Positions 15,024 to 48,280 of a stretch of 64,000 nucleotides of DNA are shown here, one piece after another. A program made the translations under genes and the position numbers. Where the stretch lies: sequence record OR545507.1; one strand, 5' to 3'. The notes below the pieces were generated by a model. It was not told the DNA's origin. It saw nothing but the letters and a program-made list of their open reading frames with translations, and did not search any database. Positions within the stretch are counted from its first letter, which is position 1, and the number at the start of each line of letters is the position of its first letter.

Positions 15024-15950
15024 TTAGAGTGAACTTAACAACAAATCTGCTCGGTTTGTAACTTGACGATACCATAAGGAATTCATAATTTCTTTTTTAA
15101 ATTTCTTAGGGTTATCATTTTTCACACTTTTCCAAAGTTTATTAAACGTTGCTAATTTATCAACACCCATTGTATAGGACATTTCATAAAGAATACGTTG
15201 TTGTTCTTTGGTCAGATTTACTGCTTCTTTTTTCTGCATCAATAATAAAAAGTCATTATATGTTCTTTTCATATCTTGCATTAAAAGTTTATTGGCTTGA
15301 GCTTTGGTAATACCGTTTCTGTACTTAATCGCATCAGATTCTTTTCTACCCAAATAATGCCCATAACCTATTGTATAATTACCTTTCATGTCCTTGTAGG
15401 GATGAAATTTAGAATTGTGGAAAGGAACTCCGACTTTCCCACCAAGTAAACGGCGTTTGTTCTTGGACTGAAATTCAATTGAACCTTCAGCTTCTTTGAT
15501 GTGATTGACAATTTCTGGATCATTATAATCAAACAGTACAGTCACATCTGGTAACAATACGTTCTTCAAATCCTCTTTTGTTGGGATAAAGATACCCTGA
15601 GAAGTATGAAGAGTAGCATTTAAATTGATATTTTTCAACAAAATAACATACTCTTCAAGTTGTACATTTTTAGGTTTAAACTTTTTAGCAATAGAATAAT
15701 AACTATCACCAGGTTGAACCGTATAATGCTTCTCGCCGCGTGGAACATCCTTTGATATTTCTACCTTTGGTAATTCCTGCTTTTGAATTTGCGTAACTTG
15801 TGGTTTTAAATTGTGTACCTGACTTTCGTCCGATGATGATACACGATCATTTTGAGAAAAACCATAAAATCCAATCGCAGCGACAAGTACTGTGCAAACT
15901 AGAACACCATAAGTAGTCTTAGTTTTCAGTGCTTTTTTCGCTTGTTTCAA
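15024..15950 (-). CDS. Membrane-anchored LysM plus T4-type lysozyme domain protein
   Basis: AAGGAGG RBS before TTG at 15950; TM segment; LysM YTVQPGDSYYSIAKKF; lysozyme E...YKDMKGNYTIGYGH...YEMSYTMG...WYRQVTNRA. Confidence 0.85.
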   Translation of the reverse strand: MKQAKKALKTKTTYGVLVCTVLVAAIGFYGFSQNDRVSSSDESQVHNLKPQVTQIQKQELPKVEISKDVPRGEKHYTVQPGDSYYSIAKKFKPKNVQLEEYVILLKNINLNATLHTSQGIFIPTKEDLKNVLLPDVTVLFDYNDPEIVNHIKEAEGSIEFQSKNKRRLLGGKVGVPFHNSKFHPYKDMKGNYTIGYGHYLGRKESDAIKYRNGITKAQANKLLMQDMKRTYNDFLLLMQKKEAVNLTKEQQRILYEMSYTMGVDKLATFNKLWKSVKNDNPKKFKKEIMNSLWYRQVTNRADLLLSSL

Positions 15951-16066
15951 AACGCCTCCTTTGTTGATTGTTAAGATGGGCAATCACAAAGATGGCAAAG
16001 AGGCCATTTGTAAAAGCCTCATCGGACTTTCTACAGTACAAAAACGTTCTTTTCAAATGTTTAAGT

Positions 16067-16094
16067 AGTATAGCATATTTTTATTTTATTACAA
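16067..16094 (-). promoter_or_regulatory. Sigma70-like promoter TTGTAA-16-TATACT
   Basis: Minus-strand match with TG extension, upstream of the lysozyme leader. Confidence 0.55.
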
Positions 16095-16118
16095 GACATA
16101 TTTACTGTAAAAACCACA

Positions 16119-16529
16119 TTAATCGTAGTAGGTTCTACCTACAGTGATGTGATATTTAAAGTACTTGGTTGGTAGTCCTAGTTCATTTCTAATATGTGTG
16201 ATGAAATCATCTTCAAATTCAATGATAAAGAATGAACCTGGATTCTTTTTATCTTTTACTATCTCAATACAAGGATTGAACTTTATCTTTACTTTCATTC
16301 CATCGTACTTTTTCCAGTACTCTGGATTTGGTGGCACTTCACCACGAACGATACTGACATGTGCTCCCCATTGTGGGTCTTTAATATCAATATGTAAGTC
16401 AGTTCTGATGAAGTACTGGTAGTATCGAACCAACTGTAATGGAAGTTGTAGTACTAACCAGAAGTCCTTCTTCTTTTTCATAGTGCCACGTTCTGGATCA
16501 TACACCAGAGTTCCTTCCATTTCAATCAT
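16119..16529 (-). CDS. 2H phosphoesterase superfamily protein
   Basis: Two Hx(S/T) motifs: GAHVSIV and YHITVG. Confidence 0.7.
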   Translation of the reverse strand: MIEMEGTLVYDPERGTMKKKKDFWLVLQLPLQLVRYYQYFIRTDLHIDIKDPQWGAHVSIVRGEVPPNPEYWKKYDGMKVKIKFNPCIEIVKDKKNPGSFFIIEFEDDFITHIRNELGLPTKYFKYHITVGRTYYD

Positions 16530-21936: not shown

Positions 21937-22365
21937 TTAGTTAATAATAAAGGTAATTTCAGGATTCATTTCCGAAACTGCATTGCGTTTACTTCTATCC
22001 CATAGTATTCTGTTATTATACAAAGAAGAATCACATACTACAAGTAAGCAATTTCTTAATCTACTTACAGTACTTTGATTATTTAAATCAGTTTCTGAAA
22101 TAAAAAATACATTTTCAGGAACTACTAAAGGAATAGATTTATCAAAAAACAAAACTACAATAGGTCTTGTTGTATGAACTGATTTAACGAAATCCAAAAT
22201 ACTATTATAAAAATTAGTTTCTTTAGTAATTACTGACGGATCTTTAATTCTTTTCAAATATTGCTGTGGTAATTGATGTTCGTCTTTTATCTGAAACTCA
22301 AAATATTCTTTGAATAACATTTGTGTTAATTCGGATTTATCGGATATTTTCGTTGTGTTACTCAT
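21937..22365 (-). CDS. Hypothetical protein
   Basis: 142-aa ORF. Confidence 0.6.
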   Translation of the reverse strand: MSNTTKISDKSELTQMLFKEYFEFQIKDEHQLPQQYLKRIKDPSVITKETNFYNSILDFVKSVHTTRPIVVLFFDKSIPLVVPENVFFISETDLNNQSTVSRLRNCLLVVCDSSLYNNRILWDRSKRNAVSEMNPEITFIIN

Positions 22366-22504
22366 TCACTTCGTTCTCTCGTAACTCAAGAAGTCACTGC
22401 GTTTACTTCGTAAACTAGTTCCTTCTGAAAATGATAATGTACTTTAAAAACTTGACGGGATTTGTTGAGGACTATTACATCCCCCCGCAGGGGAATGAAG
22501 GTAA

Positions 22505-22530
22505 TAAAAAAGAGACAATTAAGTCTCTCT
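22505..22530 (-). terminator. Rho-independent terminator closing the candidate ncRNA
   Basis: AGAGAC-ttaatt-GTCTCT followed by T-run. Confidence 0.75.
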
Positions 22531-22567
22531 TGACGATGATGGCATCGGATATTATCGAATTGCGAAT

Positions 22568-22749
22568 TTCTCAAATTTTGGACGGATCTTTCTTGTACCA
22601 AAATTTAGAGAGCGAAAGCGGGTTGCTCGGTTTCTCTCTATCGCAGTCATATGCAACGGTCGCTGGTCTTTTCATCAACAGCACTCAGTACTAACTCTAT
22701 TCGATCAAAGTAGTACTTGTTCTCAAATTTTGGACGCAACTTTCTTGTA
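22568..22749. repeat. 30-bp direct repeat, 2 copies (22568-22597 and 22720-22749), 28/30 identical
   Basis: TTCTCAAATTTTGGACG(G/C)A(T/A)CTTTCTTGTA. Confidence 0.9.
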
Positions 22750-23026
22750 AAAATTGCGTCCGCTATTCTTGAACTCCCTTAGCAAATCTGGTAAGGTGCG
22801 AACCTTATACATCTATCTAGGAACTCTCTGTATGCTTATCGGAGTTCTTTATACAGCCGTGTCGCCGTGATTCGTGGTCTTACATCGTGTTTGTTTGAAT
22901 GCCAGTACTCTAACAGGTTTCTTCTGCTGTTCGCTACAACGGTAAAGCTCATCTATCCTTTACATTTTCAAGAGAAGTAGGTTCTCAGTGTCCATTTTTC
23001 AATGTCCGTTGTCATTTTCTATATAC

Positions 23027-23054
23027 ATTATATCATTGGAACATATAATGTCCC
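23027..23054 (-). promoter_or_regulatory. Promoter GGGACA-16-TGATATAAT with an inverted repeat over the -35
   Basis: ATGGGACATTATATGTTCCAATGATATAATGT; near-copy at 48244-48272. Confidence 0.7.
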
Positions 23055-23055
23055 A

Positions 23056-23454
23056 TTACATGTATACTTTTTTTAAATCCTTAGAACAACGATCAAAAAT
23101 TGTGTTTATGAATTCAACATCTTCGATAATATTCGAATCGTTAGCAACATTTTCATTTCTTGTCGTGTTCCTATATGTGTGTTCAGGATGATTGTATACC
23201 ACCTTGACTACATTATTTAGGTCTATAAAATTTGACGTTTTTTGCGTATAGGAAGCCTGAAGCTTGATGAGTTTACCATCATTCTCAAGATTGGTTTTAT
23301 GAATTAGTTCTTCAATGCCAGTTAAATGGCTATAGCTATCTTTTTCTTTTACAAAAGTAATAGTAACAAGAACTGCTTTCTCATCTCCCATATCGGAAAT
23401 GTTTTTTACAGCACTGATAATTTCTAAGTTTGAAAAATCTAATTCTTTAAGCAT
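23056..23454 (-). CDS. Hypothetical protein
   Basis: Likely ATG at 23454 (MLKELDF), directly after the upstream stop. Confidence 0.6.
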   Translation of the reverse strand: MLKELDFSNLEIISAVKNISDMGDEKAVLVTITFVKEKDSYSHLTGIEELIHKTNLENDGKLIKLQASYTQKTSNFIDLNNVVKVVYNHPEHTYRNTTRNENVANDSNIIEDVEFINTIFDRCSKDLKKVYM

Positions 23455-47797: not shown

Positions 47798-48023
47798 ATG
47801 AAATCTCCTTTAAGTTAAAATAACCTAATGGAAAGTCATTCTTCCTTTAATACATGTTCTCATGATTTGTTCCTTTTGTCAAGATATAGATATAAAAAAT
47901 CCCTGCCAAAAGACAGGGACGAAAAACTGAAATAACACATGGAGTTCTTTTTAATTTAATAAAAAGTATTATTATTCTTATAAAAGTATTTATTAAGAAC
48001 TCCACAATATGTCTTCAAATGAA

Positions 48024-48212
48024 TCAAAAACCTTTCTGAGCTACTAGTTCACGGTACTGTGCACGAGTTAGTACACCTTGTTTGCGTAGAGCTTGAAGAC
48101 CGGATAGGGTTTCACTCTTACGTTGTTCGTACATACGTTGTTCTTTAGATTGAATAACTTTCTCTTTCTTAACTTTTGCTACTGGTTCTTTTTTCTTAGG
48201 TTGTTTAGCCAT
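48024..48212 (-). CDS. Small basic protein
   Basis: AAGGAG RBS; Lys-rich. Confidence 0.7.
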   Translation of the reverse strand: MAKQPKKKEPVAKVKKEKVIQSKEQRMYEQRKSETLSGLQALRKQGVLTRAQYRELVAQKGF

Positions 48213-48243
48213 TTTATATCTCCTTCTGTATTATGATAACAAC

Positions 48244-48272
48244 ATTATATCATGTATGGGACATAATGTCCC
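48244..48272 (-). promoter_or_regulatory. Promoter GGGACA-17-TGATATAAT with palindrome TATGGGACATTATGTCCCATA
   Basis: Near-copy of the 23027-23054 promoter. Confidence 0.7.
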
Positions 48273-48280
48273 ATACAATA

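Follow-up and report, generated by a model that had tools for sequence, protein, structure and literature searches.

We identify positions 23055-22451 on the minus strand of a 64,000-nucleotide (nt) stretch of sequence record OR545507.1 (the window) as a predicted stand-alone non-coding RNA gene with a promoter of its own. Its putative product belongs to a heavily pseudoknotted RNA family of ~515-570 nt with four diverged paralogs in Escherichia phage PBECO4 (KC295538.1; Asteriusvirus), a RaK2-like jumbo myovirus to which window positions 22300-23150 are 100% identical. Coordinates in the PBECO4 genome equal those in the window plus 15521, with the strand unchanged. A preliminary description of the window, drawn from its letters alone, had suggested a large structured non-coding RNA at this site. 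This suggestion is strongly supported by paralogs, orthologs, compensatory changes, three covarying pseudoknots and the lack of a match in Rfam.

The element was found by blastn in 72 phage records, at 2-5 places in each and mostly at 4-5. The remainder of PBECO4 contains exactly three further copies, which are ~70% identical to the window copy, all on the minus strand and all in annotation gaps. When an 851-nt query was compared across genera, the RNA part alone aligned, with 67-72% identity (GAP32, CBB, Yen9-04, BF and Erwinia phages), and the flanking genes gave no cross-genus DNA alignment. To collect family members, IMG/VR was first scanned with patterns and an nhmmer profile was then applied, which yielded 54 unique full-length members. 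Another ~70 loci came from one metagenome scan. The 150 hits in the final profile alignment comprise 130 unique sequences, whose sources are phages, metagenomes and five islands in enterobacterial chromosomes. Patterns with 17 specified bases gave chance matches in unrelated contigs, which were removed by nhmmer; four matches in non-enterobacterial genomes (L180, L181, L183 and L187) were rejected as chance.

The fold was modelled by listing the segments between conserved anchors and then running RNAalifold on the two best-anchored domains. In these alignments, both sides had changed at 14 of the 21 predicted pairs in the domain with P3-P6 and at 26 of 35 in the 3' domain. A scan of the 3' domain by mutual information with average product correction ranked 11,325 column pairs, and the top 14 were all proposed pairs, those of P9 and P11 included. 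Among the 130 unique sequences, compensatory variation was seen in 51 of the 60 pairs examined; covariation in homologues, which the preliminary description had set as a check, was thus found. Most pairs of P3-P13 are 92-100% canonical in these sequences, and ~10 pairs, mostly at helix ends, are at 52-90%. A covariance-model alignment, which covers part of the 3' core only (93 hits, 82 distinct rows), had 99.1% of its cells paired versus 78.4% in shuffles and a covariation score of 0.652 versus 0.240, with none of 500 shuffles reaching either value. As a control, sliding the partners by 1-3 columns left 40-57% paired. Support for the 5' domain comes from alignment folding and custom variant counts, not from the covariance-model alignment. 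The predicted fold has at least 13 covariation-supported helices, with 16 drawn in all, and three hairpin-loop pseudoknots, P1, P9 and P11.

In P1, the 5' leader is predicted to form 7-8 base pairs (bp) with the loop of P1.1, a small hairpin of 3-5 bp; where this stem has 3 bp, the middle pair covaries (C-G, U-A, A-U). Inside P1 lie P1a, a variable hairpin that often has a GNRA cap, and P2, whose loop is invariant across the family as GAAAAnGUA. The pairs of P3 are 99-100% canonical with 2-4 pair types in 93-103 sequences, the insert of P3/P4 falls into three size classes among members, and five of the six P5 pairs are at least 92% canonical. The central domain is joined by the invariant segments AGAAGAAACCCGU, CGGCAAUGCGGC, AUAAAG, GAUAGACAUAU and CUAAGGGAG. 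In P9, the 6-nt loop of P8 pairs with a strand ~140 nt further downstream. P11 occurs in the variants GUUAC/GUAAC, GUUGU/ACAAC, GUCAU/AUGAC and GUUGA/UCAAC. In the covariance-model alignment, P12 and P13 are 99.0% and 100% paired, respectively, and nine of their ten pairs have changed on both sides. P14 is capped by a GNRA tetraloop in other members. Two helices returned by RNAalifold for the 3' domain were discarded. A GAC/GUC 'closing helix' (columns 81-83/219-221) showed no covariation and is missing from the divergent subfamily, which has CGAAG in place of CGUCAG; a GUU/GAC helix (columns 85-87/97-99) showed no covariation and competes with the well-supported P11.

The stems proposed in the preliminary description fared unequally. 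UAAGG/CCUUA fits the consensus as P6, AAAUUUUGG/CCAAAAUUU fits it as an extension of P14, and the 13-bp stem GGACGCAA/UUGCGUCC is present at 22761-22732, where it sits in an optional module. The remaining two are contradicted by covariation: instead of GUAAAG/CUUUAC, AAGGA pairs with UC(U)CUU in P2, and instead of AGAGAG/CUCUCU, the two strands enter P13 (GAGAG:CUUUC) and P14 (CUCUC:GAGA). The optional module, of ~38-40 nt with the consensus UACAAnAAAGWUSCGUCCAAAAUUUGAG, is found among paralogs at one, both or neither of two sites, one after CUAAGGGAG and the other inside P14. Since both sites are occupied in the window copy, this copy contains an internal direct repeat (22755-22720 versus 22605-22568). 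The duplicated module appears similar to a swappable peripheral domain. We regard the three pseudoknots, the invariant joiners and the GNRA-capped or module-swapped hairpins as hallmarks of a specific, if predicted, tertiary structure.

The conserved unit lies just after an upstream minus-strand open reading frame (ORF) that ends at 23056, and it comprises a promoter box with an extended -10, a body of ~515 nt, a terminator, a G-rich hairpin and a tail. Box and TGnTATAAT are kept in every copy of the RNA family, so that the sequence expected of a sigma-70 extended -10 promoter is both present and conserved among homologues. In several paralogs, the terminator of the upstream gene stands directly 5' of the box. 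Both signals named in the preliminary description were located on the minus strand, the extended -10 (TGATATAAT) at 23035-23027 and the intrinsic terminator (AGAGAGAC/GTCTCT with T6) at 22530-22505. Its view of the extent of the transcription unit holds for the terminator end, but the conserved unit runs past this point and takes in a hairpin at 22499-22475 and a tail that ends at 22451. The region is indeed richer in GC (0.39-0.42) than its flanks (0.26-0.33). For the 569-nt sequence the predicted minimum free energy is -151.4 kcal/mol (z = -4.65 versus dinucleotide shuffles), and none of 100 shuffles was as stable.

No conserved ORF was found among the 54 members, in which the longest run without a stop has a median length of 41-53 codons in each of the six frames. 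The claim that the region holds only a 15-codon ORF is literally wrong, as mechanical ORFs reach 38 amino acids (aa) on the minus strand and 87 aa on the plus strand; none of them is conserved. From one to six 'hypothetical proteins' are annotated over the RNA locus in PQ390715, OR699282, OR699181, PQ330092, PP886230, PV611058 and other records, and one ORF (gene 516) is called there in phage 121Q. Annotated ORFs at the RNA locus are very probably over-predictions. The locus had also been called the largest gene-free stretch. Within the window this is true of 22366-23055 only when spurious ORFs are disregarded; a 61-aa gene lies in 47798-48280, the other apparent gap. This lysine-rich ORF (~48212-48027) is preceded by a promoter of the same composite type at 48242-48274 on the minus strand. 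Two unannotated ~2-kb stretches of PBECO4, at ~151.7-153.7 kb (L005 23211-25205) and 343.9-346.1 kb (L009 17365-19644), are larger than the one studied here, and neither contains a copy of the RNA family.

Most paralog groups have, after P15, a hairpin followed by U6-8 whose stem differs from group to group; PBECO4 copies C and D lack it, as do clusters 6, 7, 12 and 14. A consensus terminator scan missed the hairpin at 22530-22505 because it has only two G-C pairs. P16, further downstream, is a hairpin of 10 bp, one arm of which is invariably GGGGGGAUGAA. Its 5' arm shows only C-to-U changes, which preserve G-U pairs and therefore indicate constraint at the level of RNA. P16 is unlikely to be a DNA palindrome or parS-like site, since its variants stay paired only via G-U. 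Across the family the tail ends in ...AAAUCYCGUCAR. Its last 6-8 nt repeat the motif preceding the terminator, and both copies change in parallel across subfamilies. Single instances of the duplicated motif are not significant versus shuffles, and because each is too short for significance, it is the parallel change that constitutes the evidence. The duplication may mean that the RNA has two equivalent sites for recognition or processing, or else that the 5' strand of P15 has a choice of two partners. In most paralogs the tail gives way to an AU-rich stretch and a two-hairpin module of ~90 nt, also in cases where no ORF on the same strand lies beyond them.

By clustering, the copies form orthologous paralog groups common to several genera. 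GAP32, CBB, Yen9-04, BF and related uncultured genomes have five such groups, Asteriusvirus has four and RaK2-like contigs have at least three, probably five. Lineages with the RNA include at least Asteriusvirus, Mimasvirus, Eneladusvirus, the RaK2-like phages and an uncultured GC-richer lineage. From genus to genus the paralogs are found at the same orthologous positions, and all copies are co-oriented in every complete genome. The gaps between copies are 44-86 kb in the 5-copy genomes and 56-110 kb in PBECO4. When compared with random placement, the 5-copy genomes gave p ~0.005-0.02 for the minimum gap and ~0.001-0.002 for the maximum gap, these being syntenic genomes and not independent trials; PBECO4 gave 0.048 and 0.018, respectively. 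The GC-richer divergent subfamily, whose architecture is unchanged, is found in metagenome contigs from ENA (L123, L128, L133, L155, L157, L158, L166, L167 and L178), with L112 and L129 grouped alongside it. It represents an uncultured phage lineage, to which no sequenced phage is closely related. In L157, the RNA has an rnhA-like gene ~3 kb away. In PBECO4, copy B is antisense to its plus-strand neighbours (baseplate hub, endonuclease VII), and copy D is immediately downstream of a putative sigma-factor gene.

The composite of box and extended -10 occurs at 18 sites in PBECO4, all on the minus strand, and four of them belong to the RNA copies. When site positions were compared with the annotation, other sites were found to precede primase, exonuclease and sigma-factor genes. 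In CBB and GAP32, a 'divergent RpoD-like' promoter class has been described that stands mostly before DNA-synthesis genes (PMC5259590). Judged by its motif, the putative promoter of the RNA gene matches this class.

Complete RNA units were also found in the chromosomes of Serratia fonticola, Serratia sp. 2723, Silvania hatchlandensis and an Enterobacteriaceae metagenome-assembled genome, and in two of 5,426 complete Escherichia coli genomes. The plasmid collection contained no copies. These units have a promoter of the phage type and reside in low-GC islands that abut normal chromosome, where they adjoin a large serine recombinase and/or a CI-like repressor. In S. fonticola the unit is beside two ParB/RepB genes at the island edge, and in E. 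coli LR-29-1 it is in a ~10.6-kb island between ffs and ybaA. The RNA unit is the sole part of the islands that matches jumbo phages. The islands may be satellites, prophage remnants or defence islands.

Table 1. Features of the RNA unit in the window (from promoter to downstream module) and its copies elsewhere. Positions are window coordinates unless a genome or an L number, our handle for a sequence, is given.
Feature	Position	Strand	Remarks
Upstream promoter box TGGGACA	23049-23055	-	family consensus TGGAACA/TGAAACG; kept 5' of the -10 in all paralogs
Extended -10 promoter TGATATAAT	23027-23035	-	predicted start ~23020; TGnTATAAT (nearly) invariant in 23 aligned members
RNA body, short form	22506-23020	-	~515 nt, predicted start to terminator U-run; nhmmer family match 23035-22451; ends predicted
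P1 5' strand ACAACGG	23006-23012	-	pseudoknot with P1.1 loop; 16 distinct complementary variants in 51 members
P2 hairpin	22953-22981	-	9-nt loop GAAAAUGUA (22969-22961) conserved; ~10 compensatory stem variants by eye
P1.1 hairpin GCU...AGC	22933-22948	-	loop CCGUUGU (22942-22936) is P1 3' strand; AUGA/GAA flanks
P3 (ACAGC/GCUGU) and P4 (CUGU/ACGG)	22853-22930	-	around variable insert, conserved AGAAGAAACC and CGGCRAY motifs
P5 hairpin GAACUC/GAGUUC	22820-22847	-	double-sided changes at 6/6 pairs; 70-98% canonical, 3-6 pair types
P6 hairpin UAAGG/CCUUA	22792-22807	-	conserved GAUAGA just 5'
Single-stranded CUAAGGGAG	22774-22782	-	AAGGGA nearly invariant; retained in divergent subfamily too
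Optional module 1, GGACGCAA/UUGCGUCC hairpin and CCAAAAUUUGAG	22722-22761	-	second motif copy in P14
P7 (AGUACUA/UAGUACU) and P8 (CUUUG/UAGAG) hairpin	22687-22717	-	P7 69-97%, P8 92-99% canonical; many pair types
P9 5' strand, P8 loop UCGAAU	22699-22704	-	pairs with 22560-22555; among top covarying column pairs
P10 hairpin	22662-22682	-	then invariant GACCGU (22661-22656)
P11 5' strand GUUGC	22653-22657	-	pseudoknot across P12 and P13; 125/125 canonical at all 5 pairs
P12 5' strand UGCGA, P13, P11 3' strand	22613-22645	-	UGCGA 22645-22641; GAGAG/CUUUC 22638-22634/22618-22614
P11 3' strand GCAAC	22626-22622	-	inside P13 loop
P14 hairpin with module 2	22561-22612	-	module 2 22612-22569; P12 3' strand UCGCA 22565-22561
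P9 3' strand AUUCGA	22555-22560	-	P9 89-98% canonical, 1-4 pair types per position
P15 hairpin CGAUG/CAUCG and proximal CGUCAAG motif	22529-22547	-	register varies among subgroups; less certain than other helices
Intrinsic terminator AGAGAGAC-UUAAUU-GUCUCU and U6	22506-22530	-	hairpin with U-run, as expected of a terminator; predicted
P16 hairpin UUCAUUCCCC-UGC-GGGGGGAUG(U)AA	22475-22499	-	in every paralog; exactly 4 occurrences in PBECO4
3' tail ACAAAUCCCGUCAAG	22451-22465	-	CGUCAAG here repeats the proximal motif
AU-rich spacer and two hairpins, up to next ORF	22366-22450	-	ATG at 22365; copy-A downstream module, homology weak
Shared proximal/distal motif, main group			UCGUCAG
Shared proximal/distal motif, Asteriusvirus and RaK2-like			CGUCAA(G)
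Shared proximal/distal motif, cluster 1			CCGUCAG
Shared proximal/distal motif, divergent subfamily			ACGAAG
Shared proximal/distal motif, L112			CUUCAAG
PBECO4 paralog	~93.7-94.2 kb (L004 14657-15207)	-	gap unannotated in KC295538.1
PBECO4 paralog	195.0-195.6 kb (L006 17042-17539)	-	gap unannotated in KC295538.1; sigma-factor gene adjoins
PBECO4 paralog	304.9-305.5 kb (L008 27925-28453)	-	gap unannotated in KC295538.1
GAP32 copies	35, 99, 178, 262, 341 kb		genome 359 kb
Yen9-04 copies	25, 94, 175, 261, 335 kb		genome 354 kb
BF copies	31, 93, 175, 259, 336 kb		genome 357 kb
PBECO4 copies	38, 94, 195, 305 kb		genome 348 kb
Island copy	L186 3693-4242		Serratia fonticola NZ_CP183218
Island copy	L185 5311-5899		
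Island copy	L184 3540-4052		
Island copy	L182 6403-7028		
Island copy	L192 ~15840-16500		E. coli LR-29-1 NZ_AP027515; blastn match 16001-16490

We propose, with moderate confidence, that the RNA acts in trans as a folded particle or ribonucleoprotein that is made at the replication (middle) stage from several copies for dose. Two forms, a terminated one of ~515 nt and a read-through one of ~570 nt, would be abundant at this stage. The RNA would fold compactly, work singly, in multimers or as a scaffold for a ribonucleoprotein, and bind a conserved, putative partner from the phage or the host. The several copies would supply the dose, their helices having drifted by compensatory change, and the island-borne copies might mimic or exploit the same interaction. 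We propose that the copies are diverged and widely spaced because 550-bp repeats would otherwise be lost from a recombination-proficient T4-like phage; at wide spacing, recombination between direct repeats would be lethal and the copies would persist. Several points weigh against this proposal. The account of spacing by dosage and recombination is one that we infer, and neither the even spacing with co-orientation nor the fact that the most strongly conserved hairpin and the tail lie beyond the terminator is specifically predicted by a simple trans-acting model. No gene consistently adjoins the RNA copies, and no partner protein or target was identified, no search for trans targets having been made. 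No transcriptome for RaK2-like phages was found in the literature searched, and both RNA ends are predicted.

Alternatively, as the preliminary description had allowed, each copy may mark a replication origin, where the transcript would be a pre-primer comparable to ColE1 RNA II or to the R-loop origins at T4 middle promoters. Its 3' G-run and the AU-rich region beyond would form or anchor an R-loop for the replisome, and integrative islands would have a copy in order to be replicated, and perhaps packaged, by an infecting jumbo phage. We give this a small but real chance of being right. Circumstantially, it would suit the four to five co-oriented, evenly spaced copies per genome, the G6 run and AT-rich stretch after the body, the RNase HI encoded by PBECO4 and the complete promoter-to-tail units in small integrative islands of host species, as well as the promoter class shared with primase, exonuclease and sigma-factor genes (PMC5259590). 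However, an R-loop primer needs neither three conserved pseudoknots nor long invariant joiners, and a strong predicted terminator separates the body from the G-run in most copies. The even spacing is shared by synteny and therefore amounts to few independent observations, and the island copies sit in the position of a lysogeny module or cargo, beside integrase and repressor, not beside replication genes. Cumulative GC skew in PBECO4 has no inflection at the four loci; it tracks gene orientation and is hence uninformative about origins. In a related version, which we consider unlikely, the RNA fold itself would be recognised on the nascent transcript by the replication machinery and so define the origins of RaK2-like jumbo phages, with the G-rich 3' end priming and the island copies being pirated origins. 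If this were true, the islands would replicate, and possibly be packaged, on jumbo-phage infection, and jumbo phages would for the first time be known to have satellite-like parasites.

The trans-acting proposal also has to be set against readings in which the RNA works on itself or on its neighbours. Invariant joiners, nested pseudoknots and GNRA caps would befit a catalytic or self-processing RNA, and the duplicated CGUCAR could then mark two equivalent processing sites at which the segment with the 3' hairpin is released or exchanged; its proximal and distal copies are identical within each RNA and co-change in 5-6 variants. Yet no ribozyme model in Rfam 15 is similar, the repeat is only 6-8 nt, with single instances that do not exceed shuffles, and in some subgroups the motif overlaps the 3' strand of P15 and may offer an alternative pairing partner; such an activity is decidedly unlikely. 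As for a cis-acting leader, in which signal sensing or modification of RNA polymerase would control internal termination and downstream expression, many copies do show the order promoter, structured RNA, terminator, conserved sequence and co-oriented ORF, and the downstream module of one paralog group has GGAG in a hairpin loop beside AUG. But in clusters 5, 8 and 9 and in PBECO4 copy B, what comes next is the terminator of a convergent gene, with no same-strand ORF, and several groups are without an internal terminator. The genes beyond the downstream module differ between and within ortholog groups or are absent, which is not the pattern of a riboswitch. Since downstream genes vary and some copies face a convergent terminator, the RNA is not a dedicated leader, and we hold this explanation to be very improbable. 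A decayed coding gene or a functionless selfish repeat is hardly credible. The hypothetical proteins of several GenBank records and the repetition of the element within a genome would point that way, but no open frame is kept across the 54 members, the paralogs hold orthologous positions across genera, and the substitutions in helices are compensatory, so that this explanation is effectively refuted by covariation.

Few bacterial or phage RNA classes larger than ~400 nt have complex conserved folds, and each of these is a proven or suspected machine. The present RNA has unusually clean covariation, three pseudoknots and four to five diverged paralogs per genome, and many GenBank records mis-annotate its locus as proteins. 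That genomic islands of the hosts have it too hints that an RNA is at the centre of a conflict between phage and host or between phage and satellite. As the host phages grow on laboratory E. coli, its function is directly testable.

A search of Rfam covariance models, a check named in the preliminary description, returned no family match and indicates that the RNA is new. With Rfam 15, the 64-kb window gave no hits at the gathering score, a permissive search of 22300-23150 gave chance-level matches only (E >= 0.69, at most ~47% of the gathering score), and seven other family loci gave no hits, whereas the positive control, signal recognition particle RNA in L192, was found. The families tested without a match include ROOL, GOLLD, OLE, HEARO, RNase P, group I/II introns, 6S and riboswitches. 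In agreement with the preliminary description, ARAGORN found no transfer RNA (tRNA) or transfer-messenger RNA gene in the window, and there was no Rfam 15 match to RNase P. The RNA was not found described in the literature searched, phage-genome papers included; papers beyond that scope could exist.

The likeness to ROOL and GOLLD that had been suggested stands as an analogy in size, complexity and phage association, but not as membership. Like them, the RNA is larger than 500 nt, has many helices and pseudoknots and occurs in phages and integrated elements. Genes for tRNA are typically adjacent to ROOL and GOLLD. In contrast, ARAGORN found none in the window, and the Rfam models of the two families are unmatched. 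To our knowledge, four to five diverged paralogs per genome with their own promoters have not been described for ROOL or GOLLD. Intermolecular contacts build the homo-oligomeric cages of these RNAs (10.1101/2024.12.08.627333), and by analogy P1, P9 and P11 could likewise make such contacts.

With the large ribozymes (RNase P RNA and group I/II introns) the RNA shares long-range pseudoknots, invariant joiners and module-swapped, GNRA-capped hairpins. It differs from them in lacking a covariance-model match, in interrupting no gene and in having its own promoter and terminator. A group I/II intron was rejected, because the RNA has a promoter to itself, with an upstream terminator in several paralogs, and the ORFs on either side are two separate, complete frames; no intron model matched. 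ColE1 RNA II, of ~550 nt, is likewise a promoter-driven non-coding transcript of ~0.5 kb, and T4 origins use middle promoters. Similar to ori(uvsY) and ori(34) of T4, the RNA would start at a middle-class promoter and is encoded at several dispersed sites per genome, and as expected of an origin transcript its promoter is of the replication-gene class. A cloned T4 origin is replicated by the infecting phage. Unlike here, a pseudoknotted, sequence-invariant core is not known to be needed in the ColE1 and T4 transcripts; in the present RNA, whose origin activity is only a candidate, a terminator precedes the putative hybrid-forming region. The pRNA of phi29 is also a structured phage RNA, with covarying loop-loop complementarity that mediates assembly, but it is ~170 nt long, single-copy and without detectable sequence or structural homology to the window RNA. 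A packaging role by likeness to it would be pure speculation.

In the distantly related Pseudomonas jumbo phage PA5oct, four abundantly or detectably transcribed ORF-free regions of 236-619 nt have been reported by RNA-seq as 'lncRNAs' (PMC7318152). Three of them, ncRNA001, ncRNA002 and ncRNA004 (L102 764-999 and 14452-14902; L103 617-1235), gave no significant match to the family profile with nhmmer, ncRNA003 not being included. Jumbo phages may thus have several unrelated large non-coding RNAs. We rate the present RNA, whose function and expression are only predicted, as a new class set apart by the unmatched Rfam 15 families, and we know of no counterpart that combines four to five anciently diverged paralogs, a replication-class promoter for each, a terminator ahead of the conserved 3' hairpin, a co-varying duplicated motif and capture by integrative islands of the hosts.

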